This document shows, in pieces, positions 30,453 through 63,705 of a stretch of DNA of 64,000 nt (position 1 is its first letter; each line of letters opens with the position of its first letter). A program made the position numbers and the translations under genes. Origin of the DNA: Takakia lepidozioides (taxonomy: Eukaryota; Plantae; Bryophyta); NCBI GenBank assembly GCA_030704615.1, contig CM060732.1, forward strand, positions 70,928,001 through 70,992,000. The letters run 5' to 3'. The notes under the pieces were generated by a model that searched no databases, had not been told where the DNA came from, and saw nothing but the letters and a program-made list of their open reading frames with translations.

Positions 30453-33093
30453 TGTTGGAAGTCAATTCTAACATTCATCAAGTCATATGATGAATCTTGT
30501 AGGGACACAACTGTTAGACAAAGAGTTGTGATCTGTGTGAGTTAGACCTATTGGTTGTATCAATAGTCACAACTATTCATATGTCTTAAAGTGAGCACAC
30601 GCTCACTGTTGTAACATCTTCTTCATTATCAATTACAAGTCACTCTCTCTCTCCATAAATTTAACATGGTATCAGGCCTCTATAGATAATATAGAACGAT
30701 CCGATGGGATGGGACTCCTTGTTTCAAATTGACCTTAACATTCTATGAGTTTTTTGAACCATAGAAAATGTATAATGTCTTCAGAAAACATAGGGTCCTA
30801 AAATTATATAGGAAGAGTAAATCCTAATCAACGCCACAATGGCATCCTCCTCATCTAATCAAAGAACCGTCGAGAAATTAGATGGTTCTAACTATCAAAC
30901 CTAGAAGATTAGATTATCCTATCTTTAAAAAAAAAAAAAAACTCTGGGATTTAGTAATAGGTACTGAAATAAAACCTAGCTCAAGTACTTCCCCAGGTGG
31001 AACAATAACAAATCCACCAAGGACTGGTGTAGGTTCCATCGTCCATTTAAGAGATATGACAGCCCAATTGATAATCATAGATAGTGTTAAAAACACTTGT
31101 CTCGGTCATGCGACCTCTTTATTTACAGCAAATGGGAATTGGGTAGCTTTACAAAGAGTCTATCACACAAATGACATGATAAATAAGCCTTCGTGGGAGC
31201 AAAGTCCGTCAGCTCATGTGGCATGAGATTTTCCCTTCACACATGCGGCTTTTTATTCAGAAGTCCAAGACTGATCAGTATAGAGTAGGCACTTGGGTAT
31301 TTATTGCCCGCATGAGCGGTGATTGTTGTCATGTAGCATTGATGGAACGTCTACTTATACTAGGGAACTATACAACCATAGATGCTTCTCAAGGTGGCCT
31401 CTTGCTACGAGGAATTATTGGTAGTAACCAAGAGAAATCTATGTGTTTACGACGTTGTGGCATCTCTTATTCAACACTTCGGAATTGGTTCAGGTTTTTT
31501 CATCTTAGAAAGCAATATGTCAATTACAGTTTGAGAGAAGGGAGTGACATTAAAATTCATATTCATGAACTTAGACTCCTCTTATAACAACTAGGGTCAG
31601 TGGGGGTCACATATTCAAATGAAGACAACGTAGAGACACTCTTAAGTAGTCTTCCTGAATCATACGAGCCCATAACTATGACCTTAAGTAATCAACTTGG
31701 ATTATCCCTTCAAGATGTTGCAGTCAAATTATTGACTGACGACATTCGTAGAATGAAGAATGGTGACTTATCTGCAACAGATGGAGTCACGACATTCTGG
31801 GCTGGCAGGAAGCCAAACCAGAAGAGGCAGATAACTGGATCTCCAAGAGGATCAAATAGTTATCCTGTCAACCAAGGAAACCTAGGGAGTAGCATTCAGG
31901 TTAACTCTAGAATGTGACTCACTATCTAAGTGGGAGTGTTAAAGGGTTTGTAGATTAGTAAGTCAAGTAGTAAGTAACCTTTCATATCTCGTAGACTAGA
32001 GACACTTCTCAAGAGATGTAAAGGTATGTTCAGAGACTGTAATACAACGCCTCTATTCTGTCTCAACTCTCTTTCTCACTTGTATGTTTACTCATATATA
32101 GAATATAGATATTTATATGGTATCAGAGCTAATGTTCAACCGATCCATAGAGATCTAATGAGAGTCGACTTAAGATTGTCATACTAGTACTGTAATACTA
32201 GTAGATATAATAGTCAAACAACTATCAAATGAGAGCTATGTTCATGATCTAAAACATGTTAATATTGATATGTTAATGTTGATCTTTGCATCAATATAGT
32301 TACTATAAGCACCTAAGTATGGTGAACAAATTATTCCTAGGCAAAGAAGCCAACAATGAAATATTCATGGTGAAAAAAATTGCAGAGAAGTCATGGAGAC
32401 AATTGAGTATAATGGTCATTTCAAACATTTTAAAATGTTATTCAAGCATGTAACAATTTAGATTGTTAATGATGGTTCGAGTTCCAACAAACTTGTTTAA
32501 GAACCTTCATAGAGTTATGTCATGCGACATTAACTTAAAGAAGAGATCTAAGGTGTTATCCCAACAACATCACTATTGGTGCATTATTTGAACTTCAAAT
32601 GAGCAATTTCTCCAACGAGAAGTTCTATTTGAAAATCAAGCTATCTCTGACTAATTGATAGCAAGCTGATCACAATTACGACTTCCATTTTGATGTGAAC
32701 GAAGTCTTAGTTCGACCACGGGAAAGGGAGCACATGTGAGAGGACGTTGGCCAACGCCGACAACTCTATAGATATTATTTAATCAAAGATTACAATTATG
32801 TGAATATGCTTTAATAGCATTGTTGGACAAAAACAGGGCCCTCAGAATTTAGACTCTTGAATGTTTTCATTGAGGGAGGGTGTTGGAAGTCAATTCTAGC
32901 ATTCATCAAGTCATATGATAAATCTTGAAGGGACACAACTGTTAGACAAAAAGTTGTGATCTGTGTGAGTTAGACCTTTTGGCTGTATCAATAGTCACAA
33001 CTATTCATATGCTTAAAGTGAGCACACACTCACTATTGTAACATCTTCTTCATTATCAATTACAAGTCAATCTCTCTTTTCGTAAATTTTACA
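30453..33093 (+). mobile_element. Non-autonomous Ty1/Copia LTR retrotransposon (2.6 kb)
   Basis: LTRs 30453-30666 and 32881-33093 (TG..CA); PBS TGGTATCAG at 30667 (tRNA-iMet type); PPT TTGAGGGAGGG; TSD AGAAG. Degraded Copia gag (KKLWDLVIG..; LLSSLPESYE) at 30838-31917. Confidence 0.92.
31187..31495 (+). mobile_element. Tyrosine recombinase fragment (DIRS/Ngaro-like) inserted in the Copia gag
   Basis: HMRLFIQKSKTDQYRVGTWVFIAR..CHVALMERLL..LLRGI..ISYSTLR carries the SKTDQ motif typical of DIRS/Cre-like recombinases. The gag reads ..DMINK before it and FHLRKQ after it. Confidence 0.7.
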
Positions 33094-41300: not shown

Positions 41301-44300
41301 TGGTGGTGGATGAAACAAGTCTTCTGTTCATGATTTTTCAGTCATGTCTGTGGATCGCATTGGGAGAAGACAAAAATTCTGTTCCTCAACTTGTGTTCCA
41401 CAGGATCTCGTGTTGCTCTATGATAAACTTATGTACCTAGAAAGTCCTAGCACAAACATTCTACTAGTGGCAGGAGCCTTCTTACCAGCCAACAGTTTGT
41501 GTAATGCTGACTAACACTTGTTTCATTTAGCCGTTTCTCGTTCTTTTTGCACTTGTGAGCCACACATTCATGATCTTCTTCCACCCAAACTAAATGTTAC
41601 TTTACTGAGCTCAGAATCTACTTGCCATATTCCTGGTGCAACTAGTCATGTGGCTCATTGGTGCTGAGGGTTCAATGTGGTAATGCTACATCTGACATGC
41701 ACTTGCAGATCACAGAGCGTGATGAAGGTGCTTTGAAATTTTTGGAGGATATTAAGTGGAGCAATTTGGCAGATAATAAGGGCTTTAAGCTTGACTTCTA
41801 CTTTGACAGCAACCCTTACTTCAAGAACACTCTGGTATGTCTTCCAGCCTCTCGCCTTAAAGTCAGGTATATTTGACTTGCTTTAATCCCATGTATTCAG
41901 ATAACATTGTAGTCCCCTTTCCTGTCTTTTTCTAAAGTCATACAGTTGGAGATATGGCTTCTGCAATCAGTACTGGAAATTCTAGCTACATGGGCCTTTA
42001 CAATTTCTTTTTATGGCAGGAGAATTTACTTATAAAGCTTACAAAATTTTAACTGCATGTCAATTCAGTTATTGTGTGTGCACTGCATCTTGCCACGTTT
42101 CTCCCACATGCTTCACCCCTCAAACTGATTTGCAGTTGGCCATATTCACCAATCTTGTTGTGGTCTACTTCTTTAATCAACTTGGTGTGCAGCTCAAAGA
42201 ACTCTAAAAACTGTGTAGAGGTTTGGCTAAGAGCTTGGGGTTCCTGGCAGTTGAGTAAGACTTACCACATGATTGACGATGATGAGCCTATTTTGGAGCG
42301 CGCTGTCGGGTAGGTTTTCTCCGTTGGCAGCTGGCTACAAGGTTAAGCGACTTTGTAGGATAACTCGCTTGAATGCCTGTCCTATTTGTCTCTTTCGCTC
42401 ATGTCCTAGTTCTTTGTAGTGTGACGTCAATCACAACTGAAAGTATATCTTAGGGAGCAGACTGCGGTTGGGAATCTGGAGGTTCCTCATCTCAATGTCA
42501 TAGGCAAGTCTCTCCTTTGAGAACTGCGGTGATGTAATCCACTGGAGCACATGTTCCAGCCAGCCTAACGTTGACATTGTTTATATGTGGCATCCACTTA
42601 ATGGATTAGAAGAAACTGTATTGAGTGCAAGACTCAATTTTCTGTTATGAATCACTGACATTAGTCAGGTTGAGAATCAAAACTGTCACTGCCAGTCTTT
42701 GGTGTACTTCATGGATGTACTAGAAACAACATGTAACTATATCCAATTCTGCCATGTACTCAGTGGTGGACTGTTGTTTACCCGGTGCTTGTGTAGGACG
42801 GAGATTGAGTGGAACATGGGAAAGAACATGACACAGAAGGTGTTAAAAAAGAAGCCCAAGAAAGGAGCCAAGAATGCAAAACCTGTGACAAAGACAGAAC
42901 AATGTGACAGTTTCTTCAACTTTTTTAACCCCCCTCAAGTACCTGACAATGATGATATGGACCAGGATACGGTATTGTCAACTATTCCCAGTTCTGGAGT
43001 CTGGCATTGTAATTTCACCTTCGAGTGTGGTGGTATAGTCTGTTTCTTTGTGCCCTAGACTATGTGCAGAATCATTTATTCAACTGTTTTCAACCAGCTC
43101 CTTAATTCTATTTGTTCACTTCAAATTGGTTAATACTGAGGAAGCATGTATCATACGGCTCTAGGCAGATCCGTTGTCACAGCTGGTCACAGCAGCATTG
43201 TCACACTTTACTAAGTGGTCTCAAGGTTAGCACTTACATACAAGCTAGCTTCAGACCGCTGTAGATTCTACAGTGTATAGAAAATAATGTAGGCATCTTC
43301 ACTACGTGTAGGTTGGTCTGCCTAAGGCTTTCGTGGCAATGCAGGCTGAGCAGCTACAAGATCTGATGGAGCAAGACTACGATATTGGGTGTGTAATCTC
43401 TCTGTCCCCTTCCATCTGTTGTAGCTTGGGATTGACTTTTATTAGTCCTCAGTGGTTGCAGGAATGGATTTGAACAAATGTTATTAGTATATGCACTTGG
43501 AGTGTTGATAGTGCCATCTTGTATTTTACAAAGAAAATTGGACCTTGGAAGATAGCAAGCCGACAAGATAGATTGAAGCTCTATGTTTGAGCAAGACTAG
43601 GAATGATTTTGATATCCAGTGGTGAGAATCTTTCTGATCTCAAGATGCATTTGATCCATTTTGAGCTTCTCCTCACTGTGCAGGTCAACAATAAGGGACA
43701 AGATCATCCCGCATGCAGTGTCATGGTTCACAGGCGAAGCCCTACAAGGAGAAGAATTTGAGGATGAGGATGAGGAAGGTGATGGTGATGGTGATGGTGA
43801 CGATGAGGATGAAGACGAGGATGATGAGGAGGAAGATGAGGAGGAAGAAGATGACGATGAGGAGCAAGTTCGCGGTCGAAAGGTCTCATCTAATTTCCCG
43901 TCTCTCTCTACTCTAAACCCGCTTGTAGAATATTGCCAGAAGTGCCTTACTTCTGTCTTCTTTTCTTTTTTCATATTTGTTCTTGTGTGCTTCTCTGAAA
44001 CATTGGTGGGACAGGGCACAGGTACTATGGGCCATGGCTCCCTAGCTGGTCTAGTATCTGGACATGCAAAACAATTTTTTTCACAGTATCGCATCAAGAG
44101 GGATTTCCTGGGATTTGGTTGTGTGGTCTTCAGTTGGGACAACTATTCAGCAGATTCTCACAACTGACTGGGCACGCTGCTTATTACTGAGTGGATGTGC
44201 TATTGCCCATTTGCATATCTGATGCATGTTTGATCCACAGCTGTTCTATGGCCAAGGGTTGGCTGGATAGTTGCAAAAAAACTCTCTTTTAAGTTGCAGC

Positions 44301-45266: not shown

Positions 45267-47222
45267 CTAACTATCTGGCCTTGGCTCTGATTTGTGGAGA
45301 AGCTTGAGGAGGGAGCTTGCTTTGCGCTTGGCACGGGGGGTACCCATGGTTAGTAGTGTGTACAGATAAGGAACAGCTGTGTTGACCTGGAGCAAGTCTT
45401 CCCCATTCCTACACAAAGCCAGTAACAGAGTGATGATGTTTTCCTTTCCCCTGGGTGATGCAGCCCTCAACAGGTTCATGAGGATGGGGATGGCACTTGC
45501 TGCCCTGATGGCCCTAAGGCCCTCAGCAGATCCAGCAACAAGAGCAAGCACTGCCAAAGCATCATCAATGATGCCTGCTTCCTCATCGGTGAGGAGAGCC
45601 ACAAGCAGTGGGATAGCCCCTGCATCCACAATTCTGGCCTTGTTCCCATGATAGACAGCTACATTGAACAAGGCATTAGCTGCATCTTTCTTACCTCTCC
45701 TTGGTGTGCCCTCGCGGAGAAGTGTGACCAAGGCAGGAATTGCGATGCTTCCGATCAAGCTCTTGTACTCATCGACCACTGACAAACTGAAGAGAGTCGC
45801 AGCAGCATTTTCTCTAGCCTCCCCGCTGCTGCCGCTTCTCAAAACCTCAAGAATGGGGTCCAGAGCCCCAGCAGCTACAATCAAAGACTTGTTATTGTCA
45901 TAGATGGATAAATTCAGAAGAGCAGTCACTGCATTCTCTTGAGTTTTGGAATCACAAGAAGAAAGAAGGGAGACGAGAAACGGAATGGCTCCAGCCTCTG
46001 CAATGCACCTGCGATTTTCCATGCCACACTTAGCAAGTAACCTCAACTCACAGGCAACCTGCTTCTTCACCTCAGGATTTTCAGTATTAGCAACCTTCCT
46101 TAGAAGAAACGAAGCTGTCATCTTGGTCGCCTCCAGAGCTGCACGGGTTGTGGCCATATGATCAACCCCACTTCCCTTCTTGCTAACCTTGTCTGGTTTC
46201 TCAAAGGGCATCTCGTTATCTTCGCACCACTGGCTGATGAGGCTCCGAAGGGCATTGTTAGGGATCAAGCTCTTGTGTAGGAGCTTTTGCCCACTCTTCG
46301 GACACGTAGAATGTCCTGCCTCCAGCCATCTTGAAATGGATGCACGGTCGTAGGTTTGCCCACTGGTAACGATCACAGGATCACGTATAAGGTCGAGACT
46401 GATGGGACAGCGGAATTCATCGGGGGGGGTAATGGCCCCTGTGATTTCCCTGCTAGTTTTTGACACCTTCCCTGACATCATCGAATCACGAGATAAGTCC
46501 TCAGAATCTGCCATCTCGCTCACCCCGTAGAGCACGCATTTGCCATAGCGTACAAAGCTAATTAAGCTGGTTATGATCATTCTGTTGCTGCCTGAGTCAT
46601 TGCTCAGCTCATCGTCCAACCTCTCCAGCTCTTTCTGGCAATCCCTGCCACTGAAGAGATGAAGTTGAGCAAATAACCTCTGCAATTGAGCAGAGTCTGG
46701 GGTCTCCTTCCTCTCGACTTCCTTCAGCAGTGTAAGCACCTCTTCACGCAGGTCTAGCTCTACGGGATCCAGAAAACACTTTGCCCTCGTCGCTTGCATT
46801 CTCACTAGCTCCACCTGTTCCCTGACCTCATCTGAAAGCTCCAATAACTCCAACGGAAGGCGGTTTAGTGCTACAGCCATGCTCTGCGTGAGCTGGTGGA
46901 ACTGCTGGGCCACGAACTCACTCTCCATAAGCAGCCAGAAACCACTACCCTCTCTGCAATCATCAAGCAACACCTTTGCTCTATGCATTATTCCATGCAT
47001 CTCCCGAAAGGATAGAACAGCAGATGGTGGCAGAGGAGGGCGTGAGTCTCCAATCTCTTCAAACAAGGAAGAAAGAAGCTTAATCCTGCAAGCAATGCTG
47101 GCCCCATTTCGCTTTTGACACACATCCGTCCTCTGGCATACAGCAACTTGTTGAGACAAGCTAAACAACGCTTTCACCAGGGACAAGACTGAAGGGGTGG
47201 GAGTTGGATCCATTCCCGTCAT
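45267..47222 (-). CDS. Plant U-box E3 ubiquitin ligase, UND-U-box-ARM (PUB16/17-like), single coding exon, 651 aa
   Basis: U-box PPDEFRCPISLDLIRDPVIVTSGQTYDRASISRW..TCPKSGQ..LIPNNALRSLI; ARM repeats (ELRLLAK, QENAVTALLNLS, ARENAAATLFSLS, GKKDAANALFN); ends GTPRAKRKASSLL. Confidence 0.96.
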   Translation of the reverse strand: MTGMDPTPTPSVLSLVKALFSLSQQVAVCQRTDVCQKRNGASIACRIKLLSSLFEEIGDSRPPLPPSAVLSFREMHGIMHRAKVLLDDCREGSGFWLLMESEFVAQQFHQLTQSMAVALNRLPLELLELSDEVREQVELVRMQATRAKCFLDPVELDLREEVLTLLKEVERKETPDSAQLQRLFAQLHLFSGRDCQKELERLDDELSNDSGSNRMIITSLISFVRYGKCVLYGVSEMADSEDLSRDSMMSGKVSKTSREITGAITPPDEFRCPISLDLIRDPVIVTSGQTYDRASISRWLEAGHSTCPKSGQKLLHKSLIPNNALRSLISQWCEDNEMPFEKPDKVSKKGSGVDHMATTRAALEATKMTASFLLRKVANTENPEVKKQVACELRLLAKCGMENRRCIAEAGAIPFLVSLLSSCDSKTQENAVTALLNLSIYDNNKSLIVAAGALDPILEVLRSGSSGEARENAAATLFSLSVVDEYKSLIGSIAIPALVTLLREGTPRRGKKDAANALFNVAVYHGNKARIVDAGAIPLLVALLTDEEAGIIDDALAVLALVAGSAEGLRAIRAASAIPILMNLLRAASPRGKENIITLLLALCRNGEDLLQVNTAVPYLYTLLTMGTPRAKRKASSLLKLLHKSEPRPDS

Positions 47223-47789
47223 CGCCTCCTACTTGTTGTCAATGACATAATCTGCAGAAAGATCAGTATCTCTCTCTCAATTCCCCCTATTTCACGCACC
47301 GCTCAATCTTCATCCCGTCTTCTTCTCCTCCACATTCTCCAACGAGGAAATCTTTCGTCTCAGTGACCCAATGTGTAGAAAAGATGTACCTTTCCCTCAA
47401 TTCCCTCTTCTTGGATGCCGAGCTTCCATCCCGGACCTCAGCATTATAAAGTACCATTTCATTTCATTTCATTCAATCTTCGGAATTCGTCCTTCACAGT
47501 AAATCATCTCCTCCCTAGAGCATCAACGCAATGAAAAACCCAGATTTCAGATTTCGCTGAAAGTGCAGCCTCGCATCGATCTGCGTCATCGCTCCAGCAA
47601 TGCTCGTCTCTACAAACTCGCCATCGCTGCTTCTTCTTCGCCCTCCCTCTTACGTTACTTCATACCAGTATACCTCGACGTATACATTAGGTGGCACCGT
47701 ATAGATATCCGTAATACGGTTCCGGGTTGAGTTGGGAATAAAGCCGCCCTTCAACAGTTACGGGACCACCTAATGTTCGCTTTTCTTTA

Positions 47790-48002: not shown

Positions 48003-48333
48003 GGATAAGATGCGGCGCCGAACGGCAATTTATGGTATGTGATATCGTTTTATAAGAGACTCTACCGTGGGTGTGTGTTTATTTAGGGCTCGCGTGGGCG
48101 TACAGAATATGTAGCTCATGTACATATTTATCATCTTTGGATGATGTGGCAAAGTGCCATTGCTTGTGAGGATGAGCGCTAGGTATATCCACCTGCATAG
48201 GGTACGAAATTTGGATGATAATTTGGGAAAACTTGGATGAACATCAAAGCCCGGTTATGTATTCGCCTGCCTCCTACCGACTGGCCGCTCCCGTGATTTT
48301 TCTTTAAAATTTGAAAAATAGCACAAGTGGCTA

Positions 48334-48532
48334 CCTTAGTACCTTGGCGACTTCCACACAAATTTTAATATTTCAAAGATTGTTGAAATTTTTGGAAATT
48401 GATTTTGTGAAATTAAGGAACTTTGTGAATGATAATAAAGCATATTTAGGAATATTCCATATATTGAAATGAAATTCTCAAAATAAAATAAACATTCGAC
48501 ATATGATTGTTGATCTTGCCAAGGTACTACGG
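48334..48532. mobile_element. ~200 bp Tc1/mariner-type MITE
   Basis: TIR CC(G/T)TAGTACCTTGGC / GCCAAGGTACTACGG with TA flanks. Second copy at 61540-61738; an empty-site paralogue of the host repeat lies at 24177-24395. Confidence 0.85.
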
Positions 48533-49324
48533 TATTAAGTTTTACAGGAAATAGCTATATAATCTGTTCATCCATTTGAAAATTTGGATAGAATCATCTT
48601 TTTATGTACGTTGATCCATTTATATAATCCATATTTGGTGAATTCATCCATTATTATTTTTTCCTTGTGGAAGTTTGGCGATTTCATCCATAAAAAAATG
48701 GGGAATTCACGACAGAATATTCCATTTTAATGGTTTGAGGTCGCCATTTGGCGTTTTTTCGCCAAAAAAGAAAAACATTGCCGGTTTGCTAGGCTAGCCA
48801 GGCTCATCTTGGTGGGCCTCTCATTTTAAGATAATAGGGTCTTCAATGGGCATGTGCGATGTGGCCGGTGGGCCCCGCGCACGGACGCTCAGCTCCCCAG
48901 CACCCCGCCCGCCCCGCCCGCCGCTGCGCGCGGTCGCCCAGCCACGGGCGCGGCTGCAGCAACCGCGCCCGCGCCCCCCGTCCACCGCGCGGCCAGTCCC
49001 CCGCCCATGAGTCCGCTGCCCTCCAGTCTGCCAATCCGCTGCTGCCCAGCAGTCTGCCAATCCGCCAGTCCGGTGCTGGCCAGTCCGCTGGCCAATCCCC
49101 TACCATCCAGTCCGCTGACGGCGCAGGATCGCCACCGTCCATTCCCATAACCCATCCGAGCCCTCCATTTTTAGGGCTGCAATTCAAACCTTTATCCCTG
49201 TCACCTGCCACTTGCCAGCAGCCGCGAACGTGCGCACTGTTCTTCTGGCACGTTGTCGATCGTGTCCTGTACTGCGGCGCGTTTCTTGCATGTTCAGAAG
49301 CATGTCATTTGTACTGTATAGGGC

Positions 49325-52265
49325 ATGGACGTGGAAACAAAACCCGATGATATGCTGATCACGGAAAGCCCGCTTATACGGCCTCTTCGACAATGTTTGC
49401 AAACAGCAAAACCAGGACCCTTCAACAGGAAGGATCTCCATTGGAAGAGTGAGACGCAATATGGGTTTATGGGTATGCGAGTGAATGTTGAAAAGGCCTG
49501 CATACCTTGGGATAGAGTTGATGACTTTGTCTTGGGAGATGAGAGTTTGGAGGATTACCCCACTCAATTTTGGGTGAATGTCCATTCTAAAGTGGAACCC
49601 GGCTCGTGAAAAGCACCCAGAGCCAACACATTTCTGTCCAGTATTATGTGTGCACCATCCTCAGTCCTTTTGACGTTTCATTGCATGTCTGTTGTCATTT
49701 TTTGTTTCACGAGTTCTCTGATTTTATGCTTCCTCAAGTCGTTGGATATCGATTTTAGAACTTTCAGTCCAGGTATCAATGCTGCTACGGTCCTGATGAC
49801 AAGCGCACCAACAAGGCAATAGTGGAGGATCCAAAACAGAAGCGTGGAGGACCTTTTGTGGGTGCTGGAACATCTTGCCCTCATAAAGGCCCAAGGAGAA
49901 AGAAGTCGGAGTATGGAGAGTCTTACAAGCGTGGTTGCCAATGTTGTTTCAAGGTCCAGCAATGCTATCTCGCCCCTGACATCTGTGTCCTCACGTACTA
50001 CAACAACATGGAGCATACAGATGCGCAAGGGAAACCCTCGCATGGGAAGTCCGCAGAGTTCAGGAACACCCGCCACGCCTATGCACCACACATTAGCGAG
50101 GAATTGAAAGCCTGGGTCGTCGAGTGTTTGTGCCGAGGCCTGTCGGTCGCCCAAATCATGATGGAGCATAAAGAGCACGTGATGAACAACACCGGCTTGG
50201 GCGATGCATGGACCCGCGATGATTTCTTCTTGGAGCAAGATGTTCGCAACCTTGCCGAGAAACGTGCGTGACAAACCTTCAAAAAGCACGCCGATGATGC
50301 GGAGAGTGTGCGCATGTGGAGAGACCAGAATCCTGCGTCCGTTTTTTTCTATCAAGAGGAGAAATTAGAGCCAACATTCGAGCATTTTGATGGAGATTTG
50401 ACATTCACTATTGGCATACAGACTCCGTGGCAGAAACGACGAATGCTGGAACTAGGATATGACCGTATCGTTGCATGTGATGCAACCTTTGGGACAAATC
50501 ATGACAAGGTACTATTCGAACGATTCCATGGACTTGTACGAGCATGATAGCATAGTACCATGCAACATTCACATAAAATTTGGTGTGCTGACTCTTTCTG
50601 TATGTTTTCATATGTACGTTGTGGAAGACCGAGGGGCAGACCCATTGTGAACCGCTGCAGACCTTATCACTCTTATGAAGCCTTCTCGTGCATAATTGAG
50701 CGGAATTTGCTTTCTTTGACCATCTTACATTGTGCATTCCAACATATTGTACACGTTGACCGCTGTGGCAGTCCAATGGGGCAGTCCGCTGCCCCAGTCC
50801 TAGCTAGGGGAAGTCCAATGGGGAAGTCCAATGGGGAAGTCCACTGGGTAGTCCAATGGGGTTATTCCTGCACATCAACGTCATGGCATTGTACTGTCCA
50901 CTGGGCGAGTCAAGTGGCTCTGCCCACTGATACAGATCGCTGTTACAGTCCACTCCGGCAGTCCACCATTGCAATCCGATCCCAAGACTCTAATGTGTAC
51001 CATGTGTGTTGTGCAGAATTGTTTTTGAAGGAGTACTCATTTTCCTCTGCCTTTGGCATGTCCACAAGGCATGGGTGAAGCAATCATGCAAGAAAACGAA
51101 GGATCCGGTGACCGCTGTAAACTTGTTGAAGGATATGGGAGACCTCATGTACTATAGAGGGGGACCACACAACGAGAAAAGAGCGCTTCAGTGGGTTGCA
51201 AGGAGAATCCGTCGTATGAGGTCAAAATACCCGAAAGGACATGAATTTCTTGACTATATCGAACAGTACTGGAAGCCCAAAATAGCAATGTGGTGTACAG
51301 CAGCCCACCATGTCCCTCATGCGAGCCAAGACACAAACGCAAGCATTGAGGCATACCATGGAAATCTGAAGGCAAGAATTGCCATAGGGAAAGGCAAGAT
51401 GAGTGGTCGTAGAGTGGACTGGCTTATATGGGAACTCACTGGCCGTGTGCTAACACAGTACTGGTACGCAATCCATTTGAAGACCCACGGGTTCATAAGA
51501 AATGACAAACACGAAAAGTATATATCCAGTTCTATACTTGCGGCATGAGACATTCATGCTGAGAGTGTTACTTTTCCCTTGGGTCCTGGTGAACCAGCCT
51601 TCGTTCTCAGCAGCACCCCGGCACAACATACATTGTTTACAATCCTAATTGTGATTGGGCTTGTTGCACGTGCCCATGGGCAATGAAGCAAGCATCAGGT
51701 CCGTGTCCTGAAGATGCTTCACCCTGACCTGCAGGATGGCCTCCTTGTGCGCGCTTGTGGCACGGCGCTGGGAACCATTCATGGAGGATTACCTAACTTG
51801 CTCTTGGGCAATGGTGCCAGCGGCAACAACGAATCCAACCAGTTCATGGAAAGACATCCTCCGGACGACTTCCCCTACGACGAGGCACCTCTGGAGGTCT
51901 CAGCCTCAATGGAACAAGAATTCGCGGATATACTTCGCATTGTAGGTGATGACAAATACCTGGAGGCACATGCCCGATCTACTATTTGTATGTGCAGATG
52001 GCAGCTCGTTGATATCCTGACGAAAAGTGCGGCTACAATGTTGCACCCTGCGGCAGCGAAGGCTTTCCGTTCTCTGAACAACAACAACAACAACAACAAC
52101 ATGTCTCTGAAAAGGAGACGAGATTTCATGGAGGCCTGGAAAACCCGGCCTAGGGTTTTGCGGAGAACCAGCAAGAGGGTGTCTGCACCTGCACCTGCAG
52201 CACATATATACTCGAAAATTCGCAAGGTTTCAGGTCGTGTAGGTGTCACGAAGAAGACAATATAA
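49325..52265 (+). pseudogene. MULE/SWIM-type transposase, spliced, inactivated by point mutations
   Basis: Motifs IPWDRVDDFV.G, YQCCYGPDD, KRGCQCCF..H (WRKY/GCM1-like), FTIGIQTPWQ..IVACDATFGTN (first D), LCLWHVHKAW (CxxH), DTNASIEAYHGNLK (E) and a SWIM-like ACCTCPW. Introns at ~49648-49772 and ~50509-51017; in-frame TGA stops at 49607, 50269 and 51546. Confidence 0.88.
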
Positions 52266-53010
52266 GTCTGCAATTCCTCTAGTAGCATTGTCCTTTTCTG
52301 AAATACAAGTCCGCAATGGACTCATGCACAGTCTCCCAACAGACTCCTCCAGTCTCCACAATCCCAGCACACTCCGGCACAAACTCCCGGTTGCAGAGTC
52401 CCACAATGGACTCCTGCACAGTCTCCCAACTGACTCCCACACAGTCTCCCAAGCATAGTTTCCCAACGGACTCACGCACAGTCTCCCAACAGAGTCACAG
52501 TCAACAGACTGCGAACGCCAATAAGCCAGTCTGCTGGTCAGTCTGCTGCCCACTCCAAAAGTCTGCTCACCACACTTCCACCTCATCCCTGCAACTCTTC
52601 CAGCAGACTGCTAGACAGACTAAGTCTCAAGCAGACTCATCCACAACAGTAGACTCAAAATGGACAGGCTCCAGTGGACTACCTCCCTAACGACTCATGC
52701 CAATCCAGCGTCCCAGCAGACTCATGGACATGGTGCCTACCAGACTAGGTACCAGACCCACCAGTCCTAGCCTCGGCAGCGTACTGCTTGCACATTCAAG
52801 CTTAGCAGACTCGGGTGCACAGTGCATGGAAAAATTGACACCATTGTGTCCATTGAGTTTAGTGACAACATTACAAAACATGCCAGCACCCACAGTACAC
52901 AAAAGTGCTCATCACCACTGGAATAGTAAGCGAAAAGACTCGCATGTTTTATTTCGGTACATAGACACAGGACAAGTACATCATACTCATGAGAGCAATT
53001 TCTCTATATA

Positions 53011-54610
53011 CTAGGCACACTGCATTCGCTGCCCAAGTGCAAACTTGAAAGTAAACCAGTCCTTTGTGAAAGGTGTTCCTCTCTCTGGCTTTGCAGTCTT
53101 GGAGACATTTCCTCTAACTTTTACCCACTCATAAAACACTTGAATGAATGACATGATGTAAAAGCCACACTCCCAGCTGAATGGTTGCTGGGGTAGATCA
53201 GGCGCGTGGAACTGAAATGCTTGGACAATCTCATGCCACTCCGGTGAGTCCATCGAGTACCCTAAGCACTCAGCATGAAGCTTCCGAATCCACCCTAGAA
53301 CAAAAGGACAACTATGCAAGTCCCTAATAGAGTTCAGGTGAGTGTAACAGCCCTTGCGGAGGTCGATGATACAAACACTCCAGTGCCCCCTGCAATGGTA
53401 TCAAACAACATGGCGTCATTGCACAATCATGATGGGCAGACTCAGCAGACTGACACTTAGCAGACCGACCACTCAGTAGACTCAGCACTCAACAGACTCA
53501 ATCTTCAAACCCAGTCCACTGCACAAACACAGAGGTCAACTTAATTGCTCAGAGTCAAGACGACACTGCGAAACCAGACTATGACTCAGGAGACAGTCTC
53601 AGCAGACTCGGAAGAGTTCTCACTCGTCCCCAATTGGCACCAAAATGAAATCGCACTCTTTCAAGTCCTTGCCTAGTCGTTCAGTGCTAAGGCAACATTT
53701 CAAGACCTCCAGAAGGCTTTCACGTTGCCCCACCCCCAATGACTTCAACACTGTCCACGTCGACGTTGGAAGAACAGCAATAGTGTTGGTGAACCGACTT
53801 CTCATAGAATCGACACCACAGCTCCATGAGTCTATCTGTGCACTCCGACTCAACCTTCTAGAGCGCCTTTATGTCATCCGGCGACAGTCCGCATTCAAAC
53901 CGTGGGTCCCCTTCAAAAAACATCAGCATGGAATTACCCGCCTTGACGTGCAGAGCATGTGCTTTGCCAAACCGAGCACCCATCCTGTACAAAGCAGACC
54001 ATCCTTCGGGAAGCCTCATGTACTGAACAGACTGACGTCAACATGGTACCAAACACTCTACAGGCTAAACAGTTCATCAGACTGACAAGACTAACCACAA
54101 CAGACAATGATGAAACCAACAGCAGACTGACTAGCGAGCAGACTGACCACAACAGAGCGCAAAGCACTTAATGACAAAGACAGACGAGGAGACTGAGCAC
54201 AGTACTCACCTATGCTGCTCCAGGAAACGACCCACATCTTTGTCCATGTCCACGGCCAGCTTGCAGTTCTTGTTCATAAAGACGCCAGACTTTTTCTTCA
54301 TCGGTCTCTTGGTACTCGGTCCCTCCTCGACCTCCTCAGCATGGTCCACGACAGTCCGCTTCTTGGCTTTGCCTCTCCCCTGGAAAGCAGGGACAGCTGT
54401 AGGCGGGCTGGATAGAGCAGACAAACGCAGCGCTGCCGCCCTACTTCGCAACAGAGGCTGGTCAGCAGGTTTGTTTACACTTGCTGGACCTGTCTTTGCA
54501 GCTTCGTGGGTCGCATGTGTACAACTGACCCGCGCATCGGGGGGCGTGCTCACCCCCACACCTTTCTTGGTTGTCGATCCCACGTTTGCAGCATAGGCAG
54601 AAGATGTCAT
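53011..54610 (-). pseudogene. Ulp1-like (peptidase C48, SUMO-protease fold) cargo gene of the MULE
   Basis: Spliced reading ..DFILVPIGDE|GHWSVCIIDLRKGCYTHLNS..LPQQPFSWECGFYIMSFI gives the His, Asp/Asn, Gln and Cys catalytic pattern. Intron ~53390-53622; upstream exon 54210-54610 is basic and NLS-like. Confidence 0.82.
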
Positions 54611-54779
54611 ATCCTTAGAAGTAGACAGTCTGCCGACGGAGGGACGAACATCCTGTGAGGATACCGAGCAAAATGGCGAATTAGCCCAATTTCACAATGT
54701 GCTAAAACATAAACAATAGTGCTGAAAGATGAAATGGCACAACCTGCCCAAGGGGTGAGGGAGCAAACTCCATGTAATC

Positions 54780-57700
54780 CAGCGCTATACCAGACATTGT
54801 CTGCGCCGCATGTGGTTCCTTGTCAGTGTGCCTGCCAGCATGTTCAGTCTGTTGCTCAATGTGGGCAGTCTGCTCGGCCACCGGTTCTTCGTCAGTCCTT
54901 TCGTCTGTGAACTGTGCAGTCTGCTGGCAACTCTGCGGTTCAGTCTCGTCCTCAATGTGGGCAGTGTGCTCGGTGGCAGGTTGGTTGTCAGTCCTTCCCT
55001 CTGTGAAGTGTGCAGTGTGCTGGTCAGGCCGTGCAGTCTGAACTGTGCAGTCAGAGCTGAGCTGTGCAGTCTGCCGCTCCGAGCCATCCTAGTCAGTCGT
55101 TCCATCTGTGACCTGTGCAGTCTGTTAATTAGTCTGCGGTTCAGTCTGCTCATCAATGAAGACAGTATGCTGCCCCGCCACAGGTTGCTCGGCAGTCCTT
55201 CCATGTGTCGACTGTTCAGTGTGTTGGTCAGTCTGGTGGACAGCCGGCTGGGTGTTCGGATCTCCATGGGCTTGGGAAACATCAAGAACATGTATGGAAG
55301 ACCCACCGGCAATTGCTTCCTCAGACTCTTCTGTAAGATCTATGATACGGTTTTGCGTTCCCAGATTGAGTTCGGTCATCACGTAAGACTCATCTATGGC
55401 TTTCGCCACTGAGCGCACGAAAACGGGACTAAGTTGGAAGGTCATAGAAGGCAGGCCACGGGGAGCTGGATAAAAATGCTTTATCGGTGACCTAATGACG
55501 TCGTCAGTGAATGTGCCTGGGAGAAAAGTGGACTCGATCAAAACACTCATACTGGCAGATCCAAAAACATGTTGTTGGGAACTCAGCAGAAATTCGTCCA
55601 CAGGGTCCCGGTGAGGCCAGTGCATCCGAGTCTGTTGCACAATCCAGGGAACAGACTGGCTGTTAGTCTCCTGGATAGTCTGCTCGGCCATCTGCTGAGT
55701 GGGTTCGCCAGTGTGCTGCACAGTCTGCTGAGGGGTAATCTGCTGGCTGGATTCGTCGGTCTGCTGCACAGTCTGCTGAGGGGCAGTCTGGTGGCCATGT
55801 TTGCTGGTCTGCTGCATAGTCGACTAAGGGGCAGTCTATTGGCCGGTCTGTTCTCCGGTCTGCTGCAAAGTCTGCAAAGTTTGCTGCCCGCTCAGTATTG
55901 TTTGCACATACTGAGTATGTGTGTGCGGGGTAGTCTGCTGGGAGTGATCCGGCCTATTACCCAGGACGGTCTGGTGCACATGCTCGGTTTCCAGCACTTG
56001 GGCAGTCTGCCCACATGTATCGTGGGGAATATGTTGTTGGACATTCTTGTGGCCAGTCTGCTGGATAGTCTCCCGAACTCCTTGTAAAGCCAGGACAAGG
56101 TCCCTTGCACCTTTGGCAAAAGAGTCGAAAGCAGCCTGCACTTGCTTGTCTCTCAGATCAACTCGCCCTGCAACACATGTTTATGCAAATGTGAACTTCT
56201 AAAAAAGTTGGCAAAAGAAATTGAGTTGAAACACGAAAGTTGCCCATAACATTTTACCTTCCAAGAGATTTCCAACGAGGCCAATGTCCTTGATTTGCCG
56301 GCACAGGCATGCTCCATCGAGATGAGCAATGGCGCCGATGCGGTCTTCAGTTGGGATCCCACACCACAGGACTTTGAAGACATTGGGATTCTGCAAAACA
56401 ATGTCGAATACTACTCACTCCATCACCAATGCAAACCAGTGCAATGCGTCATCCACCACAAACTTCTGTGAATGGTGTGTTCCATGGAGTAAGTCCATCC
56501 TCAAACTATGCAGATCCTTCATCAACTTGTTGTATGAGCGGAAATTGCCAAATTGCATCCAACTGTGTTGTAGGAAGGAAGCTGCCATGCGCTCAAAGTC
56601 CTCCTCAGTCAATCCAAACAAGTGCTTTCTTCGCACCCCAAAGGTTGGATGTGTCATAGGCATATGTCTGAGGTCTTCAGGTCGTGGGTCATCCATGAGA
56701 ATCAGCTGCACAAGTAGAGGCGACACATTTTGGACGCTTGTGGCTTCAATGGCAACAGCAGAGGCGGCTTCCAGAACATGGTTGGCTTCCTCAATAGAAA
56801 ACTCCATGGAATAATGAAAGGGTACAAATGACCACCGGCGGTCCGCAACAATCCAGTGGAGCTCATTATGCCAATCCAAATGGGGATTGATTTCTCCCAC
56901 CCTAAGCCGGGGAAGTGTGAGGTCTTCAGCTCCGGGTCGAATTACCGGTGATGGCGATCGCCAAACTGCAAAAAGCGCCATGCTATATGAGAGAAAGGCA
57001 GTCTGCTGGTCCGCAGTCTGTTGGATGACAAGACTTCCCATTGGCATGGGCTGCATGATGGGCTCCTGGAGAGGAGTCTGCAGGATAACAGGCTGCTCGT
57101 TGGGAGTCTGCTCCATTGGAGTCTGCTGGATGACAGGCTACTGGATGACGGCCTGCTGAATGGGAGTCTGTTGGATGGCAGACTCGACTGTCCCAGACGT
57201 ATTCCCTCCCGACGCGTTTTGAATATGTAATGCCGCTATAGCAGCAGATGACCCAGGATACTTCAATAATATGTACTCTCGCACGCGGTCCACTTCTGCA
57301 CGCACTACAGTCGCTTGTAAATGAACATCATTGCTAGGTATCCGCCAAGCCTGAATGGCCCTACGAATAGAAACACGTTCATCCTGGTACACGGCAGAGA
57401 TATTGGACGTCAGGAACATAGACGTGAACTCTATATTCACCTCATGCAGCGGACTGGACTCACAGACCAGCAGACTAACAGACGTAACGTGCGTACGTAG
57501 GGTGGAGGTAACTAGTAGACTGTACCAGTGGACTGGACCAGCGGACTGACAAACGGACTCAGTAAGTAATGCAGCGATATAAAACAGACTAACTGACGAG
57601 CGGAGTGAGCCAGCGGACCGAGGAGAGAACGCAGCGGATTGACTAGACTGAATAGGCAACGTGACCCCGATGATGGACTCAAACAGCACAGAGAACAGAC

Positions 57701-58719
57701 TGGGCGGTCAGACTGACCATTACCTCCTCTACTTCATCATCGTCATCTTCATCTTCAAAGCTATTCAACCAGTTCTGTTCCGCCTGTCGGATGAATGTGC
57801 GTAGCAGACCTGACTGGGCAACTCTGTAGAAATAACGGAAGAAATCTGGATCCCCAATTGGTGGGCACTCTGATGGGAAAAGCCCAAAGTCAACGAGGCG
57901 CAATGTGCCAAGGCAGACTGGTCCTTCAGTGCTCTGTTGAGTTTTTGGTTTTGACCCTAAACCTCTGGCATGGGTCGCGATATTTGTGTGAGTCTGCTGC
58001 CGAGTCTGGTCAGGCAAGTCAATGTCCACTGGACTTGTCACCCCTTCCAGGCCTTCGAAGTCATCATTCCGGATAATGGTTTGCCCGCCCTGAGCAGATT
58101 CACTTTCAGTATCAGTACTGATGGTGTGGGTCTGCCGCCCAGGACGGGGTTCAGTCTATTGCGTGGATTTTGCCCTTGCCTCGCGAGCAGACCTTGCAGC
58201 CTTCTCCTTTTCTTGCCTCTCCTTTTTTTGGGCCCCATCACTCAGTTTACGTTTTCTGGCAGCGTCCGTCGTTCCCTGCACTTGCAAATCCTCCATTGAC
58301 GGGCCACCAGAATGGACGCCATACCGTGCGCGCACTTCGTCTAATTCCAAAGTGCGGGGGTCAAGCACTGATCCGCGCAAGCGCATTGTGGCCTCTTTGA
58401 CAATCGACATTTCTTTCAGTATCGGCCAAGGCTTGAAATCCCGTGGAATCATTGCAACAATCTCCTTGCAACCCATGTCAACACAATGCCAATTTAGTTG
58501 GATTTTGTCCTTGATAACCTCTTCACAGAAGGGACAGAAGAGCTTGTCCTTCTGCCAATTCGAGTTTTTGGGCTTCCGGGCGCAGAGGTCTACAAATGCT
58601 TCCACTATTTTATGATCAAACTCGTCTGGTGAGTACCAGTACCTTCGCTCCTTCTTCAGTCTGGTTTGGTGCACAAAATCCACCCAGTCCGCTCCACCCT
58701 TTTCACAAGCATCCTCCAT
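54780..58719 (-). pseudogene. Additional MULE cargo ORFs of unknown function (zinc-finger-like N-terminal ORF, globular segments, Gln/Thr-rich repeats)
   Basis: Co-directional ORFs 58156-58719 (FCPFC..WHC), 57679-58041, 57138-57689, 56415-57116, 55836-56141 and 55125-55817 (QQT repeats). Several are joined across single TAG/TAA stops or splice-like junctions; no family recognised. Confidence 0.6.
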
Positions 58720-61539
58720 CGCTGCAGAATGAAGCGAGGGTGCAAGGACAATGAGCGACAGATAGAAGTCCTATGAAAAGACTCACCCTCAGCAAAAAGA
58801 GGACACAGAATGGAATGGAAACACCATAGCAAGTGAGAACCTCACCGAGCCGATGAACTTCGAGTTGTTACGAAGGCGAGCATGTTTGCGACGCTTTGCG
58901 GCTCACCGCGACTCTCCACACCTGGGGAAGAACGGCCGTCTTTTGTTACGGTGATGGAAACGCAAAGAGGAAAACAAAACAGTGCGAAGAAACAAGCGCG
59001 AAGAGAATGGAGTCGATCACACAGGGAACATGAGAAGAAAGTAGAAGTAGAAGGGGGAAAACGGGCATGGCACTGCCAACGTGGCGCGATTTCACAGGCG
59101 CCAACTATCCGTCGTCATCGCATTGAATACATCCACCGAACGAACACATCGTACTAAATTCATCCACGGTCCTCGCACGTGCAACAGACTCATTTCCCAT
59201 CGGGCCGAGAGTCCACCGGACCGCCAGTCCAGCGGACTATTCGCTTTGCTGAGGCGAAGCGGCTTCATATTGGAGGCACTTCCCTGCCAGCGGACACACT
59301 GAAAAGAGACTGGCAGCAGAACAGACTGACAAAGTACCAGACGAACAGACTGATATCTATCAAGGAACGATTGTCGAGCATACCTCTAGTTCAGCAGACT
59401 GGTTTGCAAAGAAGCGGGTGGAATGAAGACAAAAGAGAGTAAGGGGAGAACAGAAAAGTCGAACACACCCATTGCGAATAGACTCGCGGCACAACAGACT
59501 GATGCATGCACAGTCCAACAGACTGATATCCATAGAGGAGAACTGTCCAGCAGACGGATGTTTCGCCAGACTGGCGGGAGAACAAGCCAAAAGACTGACC
59601 AGAGGGAAAATAAGAAGTCAAACAGACTTAGTGCAACAGACTTCCAACACAACAGACTGACAAATTCACAAGTGCAACAGACTGATATCCCAACAGACGG
59701 ACTTCCAGCAGACCGCCTCCAAACTGATTGTTATGCACGCGGGGAATATCCGGAGCACTGACGGGCCAGCGGACCCACTGTGAACAGACTCGCGACACAA
59801 CGGACCTCAAACATCCACGCGCATTTGCAGATGCAATTGTCTCAGCCTGGTCCGTCTCCTGGCAAATGCGACAATGTACCGATTCTGCACCTACTCCCGT
59901 CGTGGCTCAGATATCTGCATTCAGCAGGTGCGTGTGGATGTTTGATGACCTTAGGACTGGATGGTGTTCCGTGACGACTCGAATTGCTTTTTTGTGCTGC
60001 CATCCCTTATATAATACCATGTGGATCCATCACAAAGCTGGGTTTCTTCAGAACCTCCACCCTTTTCCACAACTTATGCACGACGGATGCAAGCCGCTAT
60101 ACTTGGTCACATAAACAGTCCCATCGTCCGATACGAAATCTGCAATACACGCCCCCATGTGCATACGCTTCCGCCATTTTCGCGCCCATGTTACCCATGG
60201 GTTCCTTTAACGAACTAAACTTGTGAAGGCTCTCATGAGGGATGCAGTACGAAGGGGCTAAACGTATCATAATGGATCACAAGCAGAGGACGTTATCGAC
60301 GACAAATGTCCGCATTTTCCATATTTATGACATAGAACCAAACCATAAAACGAAGGTTCCCGAAAGCACAACAAGAAGGCAAAAATAGTGGAAGCATATG
60401 CACGATGGTGGCTGTAGTGCTGAGACAGTCCTCTCATGTTTAAGCACACGCTTCATCATCATCATGAACATCGCGCGCAAAAGAGGAACAGTCGCGTGCA
60501 TGGAAACGCCTACCGCAACATCGGACAACAAACAGCCGTCAAAAGAGAGCGGCCGGGATTTGGTGGCAAGATCATTGCCATTTTCGCAGCCCTAAAAATG
60601 GAGGGCTCGGATGGGTTATGGGAATGGACGGTGGCGATCCTGCGCCGTCAGCGGACTGGATGGCAGGGGACTGGCCAGCGGACTAGTGGGCAGACTAGCG
60701 GACTGGCAGACTGCTCGGCACCGGACTGGCCAGCACCGGACTGGCGGGCAGACTGGCGGACTGGCAGACTACTGGGCAATAGACTGGCTAGCAGCGGCCA
60801 GCAGCGGACTGGCAGATTGGAGGGCAGCGGACTCATGGGCGGGGGACTGGCCGCGCCTGCAGCTGGGCAACCGCGCGCAGCAGCGGCGGGGCGGGGCGGG
60901 CGGGGTGCTGGGGAGCCGGGCGTCCGTGCGCGGGGCCCACCGGCCACATCGCACGTGGCCATTGAAGACCCTATTATCTTTAAAATGAGAGGCTCTTGGT
61001 GGATACTGGATACCTAATCCATAATACATATAGAATAATAATCTCTCAGAAATCACACTTAAAGCCTAAGGAGCACTTACACAGAGCTTAAAAACCGGAT
61101 TTTAACCCCAAAAAAATAAAATAAAATTGAATGATCTCCATGTTAAACAAGCAGCTAGTATGGCTCCTCTTTGTGAATAATTTCATAATAAGCTTGAAAA
61201 TTCACCATTTATTTCTTATAAGTTGTTCAATATCATAGATATATAACTTGAGAGAGGTGTTACCTGGAGAAGGCACATTAGGAACCAGTTTTCAACAAAG
61301 GAGAGGAGGTGACACCTGGGCACAACAGGGTCTTAGCGGTTTTTGACATGGATGCATAGTCTCCGCTTTAGAATATAGAGGAGCCAATAAAGAGCTGACA
61401 GATTTAATTGATATATGTGATGACCCTTTTAGACGAAGTTCTCTTGCTATACATATGTACATGTGTGCGTTTGAAGAAAATTAACACTTATTAAGGGTCA
61501 GTTAGTAAAGAAAGGAGTAAGAAAACATCATAACACATA

Positions 61540-61738
61540 CCGTAGTACCTTGGCAATTTCGACACAAATTTTAATATTTCAAAGATTGTTGAAAATTTTG
61601 AAAATTGATTTTGTGAAATTAAATAACTTTGTGAATGATAATGAAGAATCTTTGGGAATGTTCCATATGTTGAAATGAAATTCTCAAAATAAAATAAATA
61701 TTCGACCAATGATTGTTGAACTTGCCAAGGTACTACAA
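61540..61738. mobile_element. Second copy of the ~200 bp MITE
   Basis: TA-CCGTAGTACCTTGGCAA...TTGCCAAGGTACTAC; body near-identical to 48334-48532. Confidence 0.85.
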
Positions 61739-62784
61739 TAATACTTAACACTTGCTTTGTAATATCTTGGGGAACAGGAATCAGACATTCAATCATTTTT
61801 AATAAAGTTCTCAAGGGCTACCTCCCCTTTCTCTAAATTGTTTTTAAAAAAAAATTCAGACAAAATTTCAGGTCGGAAGGCGCCCATGATTGGACCGTTC
61901 ATTGTGGTCAGTTTAGAAAAGCTGCTAAAAAAAGTGGTACTTGAGCATTCACAGACATACTCGAGCATTCTGCTACCTACTATTTTGGCCTCCTTCTAAT
62001 AGGAGAACAAAGTATTTGGAGTTTATAAAAAAAGAAAAAAAAAGAATGTAAGTATTTAATGGAAGCATGCAATTTGACGGTATTTTTGCGGGTCTTCACG
62101 GGCCCCGTCAAATCCTCCCACTCCCTCTTACACCCGACTCACTATTAAAGATTTTAGATTGCCATTGGTTGTTTTGTAGCTACAGGTAGTCTGCTACTAA
62201 GGCAATGGTGATAGAAGTTATGAGGTGCAGGCTTTTATTCTTGTCGGATTGCTATGTTACCCCGGTCCGTGTAACTCCGGTTTAGGGTTCACTTTAATTT
62301 GTGATATAGCAATTGGTAAATTTTGCGACACCATGTGACACCCCCTTCCATGTTGCTCCAGTATCACTCCAACTACTAGTATTACTCTGGTGATGGCACC
62401 TCGTTCTGTCTCACTTTGGTGTCACCCCTAATTTGTGCCACTCTCAAGAGGGGGTGGGGAAGATTTGACAGGGAGAAAACCATCGTCTGGGCGTTAGTTG
62501 GGGGCAAACGTGGTAGCGACTCTTTACATTGCTGGTTGTTAATCAGCTCCAACACCATCATCACTGAACCGAAGAATTTGGAGTTGATGGAGAGTCCAAT
62601 TGCTCACAATTGGAAATTGATTCTAGGGGAAAACCATTAAAGAGCGCAAGTATACTAAATCATATCGTACCATAGACGAAAAGCGCTGAAACGACTACCT
62701 TTGAATCGAATATGTCAAGGATCAATTAACCATTCGATGGTATTGTTCTGCAACGGTCGAAGCAACCCAACATGAGATCCTCCA

Positions 62785-63705
62785 TGTCGTGCGCACACAT
62801 ATCGTTACACAACTACATCGCTGTCCAAAACTACACAACACATGTGCACGCCACACACTAGTATATCACTAGTCCACCACTAGTCCGGCCACTAGTCCAA
62901 CCACTAGGCTACAACTGGTCAGTCACTAGGCTGCCACTATGCTGCCCACTATGGCAGTCACTAGTCCACACAATCGCCCCCCTAGCTGGTGCTTAGGTCT
63001 CTCTAAGTCCAGGTAGCCACAAGATGTGATAGTGACCATAGCCTCACTAAGTGCTCTACCACTATCCCTACTACACTCAAACTCGATAGATCAAGAGGCC
63101 GGGTGCAAGAGTTGCCCCATCGTTAGTCGCCGTCTTGCAACCTGTGAACTTGAGCTTGGGATCTCATGTATTGACTCCTATGAGCTTGGCCTCCCATGTC
63201 TTGTTAGCTGCCTCCAGTCATGTCCACTACCACTATCCCAAGCAGTGTGGACACAACCAATCTCCGTCAGGAACCTTCTCAAGAGGTGGTGTCAAGCATC
63301 CCATATGCCAACCCCTTGAGCATCGATCACACACCAGCATGGTGGCTGCCCCTTTGGCAGACCCACAGAGCATGCACCTCAAACCTGCAGGTACCACTGC
63401 CAAGTTTGGGTCAACTCTGCCATCGACATTGGGAAGGTGACATGGCACACAATTACGCACATGGTCCTTCCAAGTCATGCCATCCCGACCCTCCAATATC
63501 AGGACCCCTGAGGGCGACACCTCTCGAACCCTCAGAATAACATGCCCTGCAGTAACATCCAGAAGTCGTAAGAGTAGTCTGCTACAAATAAACATAGTCA
63601 CCAGGGCTAAACCTCTGAACCCTAGGACGATATCCTCCACCACGTATAGTGGCATACCTCAACGTATCACGGTGCTGTGCAATGGCAAGGTTCTCAAAAA
63701 CCATG
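62785..63705 (-). mobile_element. 3' end of a Ty3/Gypsy-like element: integrase C-terminus with a PHD finger, possible PPT and short LTR
   Basis: NLAIAQHRDTLRYATIRGGGY..FSPGDYVYL, then (frameshift) ..CMLC......MLVCDRCSRGWHMGCLTPPLEKVPDGDWLCPHC (C4HC3 PHD). Purine run AGGGGGCGAT precedes TG at 62972; LTR limits are tentative. Confidence 0.75.

Follow-up and report, generated by a model that had tools for sequence, protein, structure and literature searches.

A decayed Mutator-type element of the moss Takakia lepidozioides with a convergent C48 gene and an element-wide DNA word

Mutator-like elements (MULEs) that carry genes for Ulp1-like (ULP, C48) proteases have been described with as well as without terminal inverted repeats (TIRs). 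They belong to MuDR-like as well as Jittery-like lineages, and the ULP gene may point either way (PMC2528002); Ulp1 has also been reported from Mutator elements of hydra and lancelet (PMC2836005). The ULP-like genes borne by Arabidopsis MULEs are thought unlikely to act on SUMO (PMC6117577). A first-pass annotation of the locus described here had set it apart from KAONASHI and VANDAL, MULEs with Ulp1-like proteases but without TIRs and with MuDRA-type transposases, and had suggested an independently assembled system of transposase, deSUMOylase and accessory factor in a different MULE lineage, possibly acting against host silencing. The contrast does not hold, ULP being present in several MULE lineages and TIR-MULEs with a ULP gene in reverse orientation being already published (PMC2528002).

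Concerning the silencing of such elements, VANC21 binds a 9-base motif that lies in introns, intergenic and terminal DNA and has been spread by tandem repeats, and it demethylates its own element, VANC changing faster than the transposase (PMC5735166). VANC has been described as dicot-specific and as MAIN-derived/PMD-derived (PMC13547354). The AtMu1 transposase alone binds its cognate TIRs, where its binding peaks, and demethylates them (bioRxiv 10.64898/2026.08.24.746577). In the literature surveyed, motif-guided anti-silencing was not found outside the Arabidopsis VANDALs.

Structure of the element and its transposase

A 12-kb Mutator-type element with TIRs and a target site duplication (TSD) occupies positions 48816-60993 of the window, i.e. 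the whole stretch of 64,000 nucleotides of Takakia lepidozioides DNA that was analysed, and is a genuine but dead MULE copy. The sequence TCTTGGTGG forms a perfect direct repeat at both ends of the element, for which the chance expectation at a fixed junction is ~4e-6, and its 9 bp fall within the 8-11 bp range of Mutator TSDs. The long TIRs (365 and 408 bp) are also those of a MULE, and their arms align with 11 mismatches in 326 columns, plus indels of motif units. The TIRs of ~0.4 kb and the identical 9-bp duplications (48807-48815 and 60994-61002) reported in the first-pass annotation are both confirmed. Coordinates of all features are collected in Table 1.

Table 1. Features of the Takakia element, in window coordinates; AGTCYG is the core of the element-wide word.
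Feature	Coordinates	Strand	Description
Left TSD	48807..48815	+	9 bp
Left TIR	48816..49180	+	365 bp, GC-rich, six AGTCYG words directed inward
Transposase exon 1	49325..49647	+	in-frame stop 49607
Transposase exon 2	49773..50508	+	GCM/WRKY-like Cys/His DNA-binding region, first catalytic Asp (DATF); stop 50269
Transposase intron region	50509..51016	+	AGTCCA-variant tandem array at 50770-50861
Transposase last exon	51017..52265	+	CLWH, catalytic Glu, SWIM finger (frameshifted ~51600-51690), C-terminal tail; stop 51546
Convergent intergenic region	52266..53010	.	17 AGTCYG/kb in both orientations
Cargo exon 6	53011..53389	-	C48 catalytic half; stop 53011
Cargo exon 5	53624..54022	-	small pre-protease region, N-terminal half of C48; one stop, one frameshift
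Cargo exon 4	54210..54652	-	open, disordered, basic
Cargo exon 3	54744..56167	-	end of orphan domain, then 48-nt and 96-nt Q/T arrays (flipped word); four stops
Cargo exon 2	56258..57383	-	small helical region, 45-nt Q/T repeat, ~250-aa orphan alpha/beta domain; stops 57140, 56417
Cargo exon 1	57724..58719	-	ATG, zinc finger (58468-58536), K/E/R-rich stretch, acidic end; stop 58158
Cargo leader	58720..60585	-	5' introns and word fields (14 sense, 0 antisense AGTCYG)
Right TIR	60586..60993	-	408 bp, twelve AGTCYG words directed inward
Right TSD	60994..61002	+	9 bp

The transposase was expected to be of the SWIM type and to read inward from the left TIR, which order and motifs bear out, but in the window copy it is broken by stops and its second-Asp exon is missing, so that the DDE, CxxH and SWIM signature of MULE transposases is present save for that exon. 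Its pieces are collinear with, and 35-39% identical to, those of a distant family found on six JGI metagenome contigs (L001-L006), which are presumably Sphagnum-associated. The features matched include the Cys/His region, the Asp of DATF, CLWH, the Glu of IEAYH and the SWIM finger, here split by frameshifts. By its spacing, the Cys/His region appears to be of the GCM/WRKY type. Pfam gave a weak match to the RNaseH-like domain of ZSWIM1-3 (PF21056, E 0.08), and the protein may resemble the host SWIM genes of the At4g13970 type. No counterpart was found in any part of the element for a ~65-codon exon that supplies the second catalytic Asp in L001; this exon was probably lost by deletion in the intron region. 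The window copy is unable to move by itself.

The distant family provides a full element of 10.2 kb (L001/L002), AT-rich, with TIRs of ~130 bp and a 9-10-bp TSD, whose related transposase (38% identity) faces a convergent multi-exon gene ending in C48, and in which no obvious element-wide word is seen. Only the C48 part of the window cargo was detectably shared (z 13.8 and 5.5). Homology of the remaining cargo looked plausible by eye and was rejected, since it lay within the shuffle range of a frameshift-aware alignment and hhalign, in a local pairwise comparison with L001 and L005 pieces joined by X, was negative. The pairing of transposase and C48 is either old or repeatedly acquired. Between transposase and C48 gene, L004 (6467-7511) and L005 (1992-3148) show a 25-bp-period array within a 2.6-kb insertion.

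The element is set in AT-rich repeat DNA and flanked by a 206-bp repeat (90% identical; 48332-48537 and 61538-61743) with a third, partial copy near 24200. It is situated ~1.6 kb upstream of a U-box/ARM (PUB) gene that is intact and consists of one exon (45270-47228, -). Elsewhere, the window contains a piece of a nucleosome assembly protein (NAP) gene that encodes the acidic C-terminal part (43655-44164, +), two oppositely oriented reverse-transcriptase (LINE-like) ORFs (6196-7644, +, and 15606-17246, -) with short 3'-end repeats scattered over the stretch from 7.3 to 15.5 kb, a retroelement-like ORF ending in a PHD finger (63236-63658, -) and a DDE_1 (pogo/Tc1-like) transposase remnant (28262-29083, -). 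Also present are an ORF resembling a tyrosine-recombinase fragment (DIRS-like; 31183-31584, +), with no Pfam match at E 0.01, and a tandem array of four 67-bp copies that are 95% identical (29597-29862).

The cargo gene and its decay

Reading inward from the right TIR, the cargo contains all the parts previously noticed, i.e. a zinc-finger-like ORF, orphan globular regions, Q/T repeats and a C48 protease. The separate ORFs of what had been called a cassette are instead exons and stop-broken pieces of probably one gene. Database searches were made exon by exon, and the exons were joined for counting codons, stops and frames. Exons 1-4, bordered by GT-AG, join in phase to a single frame of 1,329 codons with seven stops (TAG, TGA or TAA). 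The cargo is most likely a single six-exon gene, modelled at ~1,590 codons. The exon 5-6 junction restores a conserved stretch ahead of the catalytic His. From exon 4 to exon 5 the reading phase does not resolve in the window copy, so C48 may alternatively be a separate short protease gene. The finger of exon 1, as read from the sequence, has the classical spacing CxxC-x12-H-x5-C with a final Cys. Within the leader, 59860-60160 (-) may be a decayed exon with a CxxC pair, belonging to a third gene or to the 5' end, and shows no family match.

The C48 domain on the minus strand is recognized by Pfam (PF02902, E 2.6e-11) and has yeast Ulp1 as best PDB match, which substantiates the proposed Ulp1-type protease gene convergent with the transposase. 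The catalytic His (53385), Gln and Cys (~53169) are present, and the Asp position (53334) is occupied by Asn in the decayed window copy, the same position being Asp in L001. Compared with the L001 family, the N-terminal part of the cargo changes fast, whereas its C48 end is conserved.

Apart from C48, Pfam yielded no significant globular-domain match in the cargo exons, nor any match to VANC, DUF1985, DUF287 or PMD; the Q/T repeat matched the extensin model below the model cut-off. Two single-sequence folds of cargo domains reached pLDDT 50 and 40, too low to be informative, and the fold search returned only generic helical matches. ESM Atlas matches were < 0.9, and a HEPN-like hint was not supported. 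Exact look-ups of ten window ORFs, length-filtered word-based protein searches with a transposase piece and a finger piece, and searches of viral and prokaryotic collections gave no match, and intact exon 1 matched only itself in a protein search. A HMMER scan of 1.84 billion representative proteins with the central domain of the cargo recovered one protein (P0001, 95% identical) and two repeat artefacts, i.e. no relative outside the family in that collection. No host source gene for the cargo was found in protein searches.

P0001 is encoded on a Logan contig of run SRR15431198, a Takakia lepidozioides metagenome (PMC9021317). On this sister copy (L007), exons 1 and 2 of the cargo are open, and the window stops at 58158, 57140 and 56417 are sense codons for Gln or Arg (Gln at 58158). 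There are 67 differences between both copies, in 47 of which the window copy has T for C or A for G, a decay pattern that reads as the methylation-driven type. The window cargo has at least eight stops, and pN/pS between the copies is 0.6-0.9. In the L001 family, dN/dS was < 1 in frame-shifted control frames as well, could not be distinguished from them and was discarded. A passenger captured by a Pack-MULE would match a host gene and be specific to one copy; the cargo showed no outside relative in the protein searches and is common to L007. The suspicion that it might be present in this copy only is countered by the open exons 1-2 of L007 and by the recurrence of the C48 layout at 38% transposase identity, and the comparison of sequences supports the cargo as a maintained family gene.

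An intron of ~120 bp lies ahead of the cargo ATG, and the L007 contig (1-210) begins right after an AG acceptor-like site (window 58921), though it comes from a DNA run.

An element-wide DNA word

The 9-mer AGTCYGYTG occurs 42 times in 48816-60993, against a shuffle mean of 0.57, and three times in the remaining 52 kb; its core AGTCYG has 101 copies in the element, where shuffles gave a mean of 12.7 and a maximum of 20. The density of the core is 8.3/kb inside and 0.6/kb outside, with a sharp drop at the element ends. Values of 16-29/kb are reached in the intergenic region, in both TIRs and in the three long introns of the cargo, and transposase and protease exons stay at background level. Most cores (83/101) lie in the interior, at distances of up to 6 kb from the ends, also within introns and exons of the cargo gene. 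The first 100 bp of the TIR, common to a sister family, are without the word. The word itself, as read from the sequence, contains one or two CHG sites, and its CCG form prevails in the TIRs (12:6) as compared with internal non-coding DNA (8:36).

Orientation follows the cargo gene. On its sense strand the core is found 42:0 in TIR, leader and introns, and reversed, 5:31, in exons. Unlike the exons, introns and leader are rich in T, and this could account for the flip provided that the word acts as double-stranded DNA irrespective of its direction. Of the flipped exonic words, 28 of 31 lie in one frame, reading Gln-Thr, or Arg-Thr in the rare CCG form. The word-spelling codon pair is used by 26 of 37 Gln-Thr pairs, where 25% would be expected from the other Gln and Thr codons of the gene (p 1e-8), although words inside tandem units are not independent, so that p-values are overstated and the statistics describe enrichment and not selection. 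The word is found in each of the three differing repeat units (45, 48 and 96 nt), and the Q/T-rich regions are accordingly the DNA word spelled out in coding linkers. Throughout the element, many of the words belong to tandem arrays with units of 13-96 nt, and the 9-mer stays constant while flanking bases and periods vary. C-to-T decay amounts to 3.8% near words and 2.9% elsewhere, i.e. no protection, at low power.

At 20004-21390 the window holds a right-end fragment of a sister MULE family. It is broken by other insertions, resembles the element at 72-83% in the cargo leader and at the start and end of the TIR, and has a variant word, GGTCCGYT, in place of AGTCYGYT.

Candidate readers of the word and comparison with known systems

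The element is best explained as a decayed member of a Mutator family that had two genes and was once autonomous. As for the word, our leading interpretation, to which we assign a probability of about 0.45, is a VANDAL/VANC-like system, separately evolved, with the zinc-finger/C48 protein as putative word reader. The word would be bound as double-stranded DNA, its effect depending on how many copies there are and not on how they point. In introns and leaders it would accordingly lie with its T-rich side up, and in flexible coding linkers in frame and in the opposite orientation. The accessory protein would bind the word, probably through the N-terminal finger, bringing the protease to the element chromatin, where its targets would be silencing factors or the transposase, to be freed of SUMO or a related tag. 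In this way the element would stay expressed and mobile, like VANDAL/VANC but from unrelated parts.

This interpretation is favoured above all by the enrichment of the word in the same compartments where VANC21 binds (PMC5735166). Also in its favour are the strand flip, the in-frame words, the Gln-Thr codon-pair excess, the three repeat units and the CHG sites, together with an accessory gene open in L007, a central domain confined to the family in the protein collection scanned, the contrast between fast N-terminal part and conserved C48, and the variant word of the sister family. It is weakened by the lack of VANC, DUF1985, DUF287 or PMD matches in Pfam, by the single finger, by the Asn at the catalytic Asp, by a word-free L001 family of the same layout and by the missing C-to-T protection near words. 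A single zinc finger rarely reads 9 bp alone. The judgement on the Arabidopsis ULP-like genes as unlikely to act on SUMO counts against it too (PMC6117577). A broader proposition, which we regard as doubtful, is that early-diverging mosses have an anti-silencing system independent of Brassicaceae VANC, in which one protein would read a CHG-containing word by its zinc finger and remove SUMO from the chromatin there by its own protease, selection on site number having rewritten part of its own coding sequence.

The transposase itself could be the reader, its TIR and subterminal sites having spread inward and aiding synapsis or self-activation, with the C48 gene as a separate KAONASHI-type accessory. 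The word is indeed densest in both TIRs, where it points inward and keeps its CCG form, the transposase has a Cys/His DNA-binding region of its own, and AtMu1 offers a precedent for TIR binding and demethylation, but the binding of AtMu1 peaks at the TIRs (bioRxiv 10.64898/2026.08.24.746577) whereas most cores are internal here, and the first 100 bp of the TIR lack the word, which makes this reading unlikely. Improbable in our estimation is likewise that nothing reads the word, a slippage-prone TIR seed having been spread by local duplication or conversion and the flip resulting from splicing (T-rich introns) and coding constraints. The many tandem units, the motif-unit indels between the TIR arms and the word-free L001 family are all compatible with it, and base composition of introns and leader versus exons could alone set the orientation; against it stand a 9-mer that is fixed while flanks and repeat periods differ, and an enrichment that ends sharply at the element borders. 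Spread by tandem repeats does not argue for lack of function, given that the bound motifs of VANDALs spread in the same way (PMC5735166). Without a reader of the word, this would be an ordinary MULE with a ULP gene, in a genome that is under-annotated. Finally, captured host gene fragments decaying neutrally as a Pack-MULE passenger, in this copy or in the family, would fit the cargo stops, the pN/pS values and a dN/dS no different from control frames, but this reading is largely refuted and very improbable in view of both long exons being open in L007, the three covered stops being C-to-T changes from Gln or Arg codons, the C-to-T/G-to-A excess toward the window copy, the host source gene not found, the convergent C48 gene recurring in the distant family and a cargo partly built from the element's own word.

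Ulp1-like proteases are found in many transposons, and the broader anti-silencing system considered above for early-diverging mosses would, if true, give them a testable role. In the Takakia element, candidate reader, protease and a precisely defined DNA word come together in one unit. With its flipped, in-frame words the cargo also offers a clear example of low-complexity protein sequence that spells out a cis-element.

The ULP1-carrying MULEs (KAONASHI of Arabidopsis and TIR- and Jittery-like elements of melon, rice and grapevine) likewise have a reverse-oriented C48/ULP gene downstream of the transposase and a 9-bp TSD, and the available parts of their descriptions mention no element-wide word. 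The present host, in contrast, is a bryophyte, and in its element C48 is preceded by a zinc finger, by orphan domains and by Q/T linkers derived from the word. KAONASHI, moreover, is non-TIR (PMC2528002), whereas the Takakia element has long TIRs. With VANDAL21 and VANDAL6, which encode VANC and have a family-specific motif of 8-9 bases, it shares a motif accumulated through tandem repeats and located in non-coding DNA, and the fast N-terminal change of its cargo parallels that of VANC relative to the transposase (PMC5735166). It differs from them in having neither absent nor degenerate TIRs, in a cargo in which Pfam finds no DUF1985/DUF287 (PMD-like) accessory domain, and in a word that also enters coding linkers, flipped. 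Hence, the element is a member of neither VANDAL nor KAONASHI, and a VANDAL-like way of working is hypothetical. AtMu1 resembles it as a TIR-MULE with a sequence-specific motif in the TIRs, but has no accessory gene and is bound terminally, while most sites are internal in Takakia. What is distinctive, and new, is the saturation with a word that invades coding sequence, together with a zinc-finger/orphan/C48 protein in a moss.
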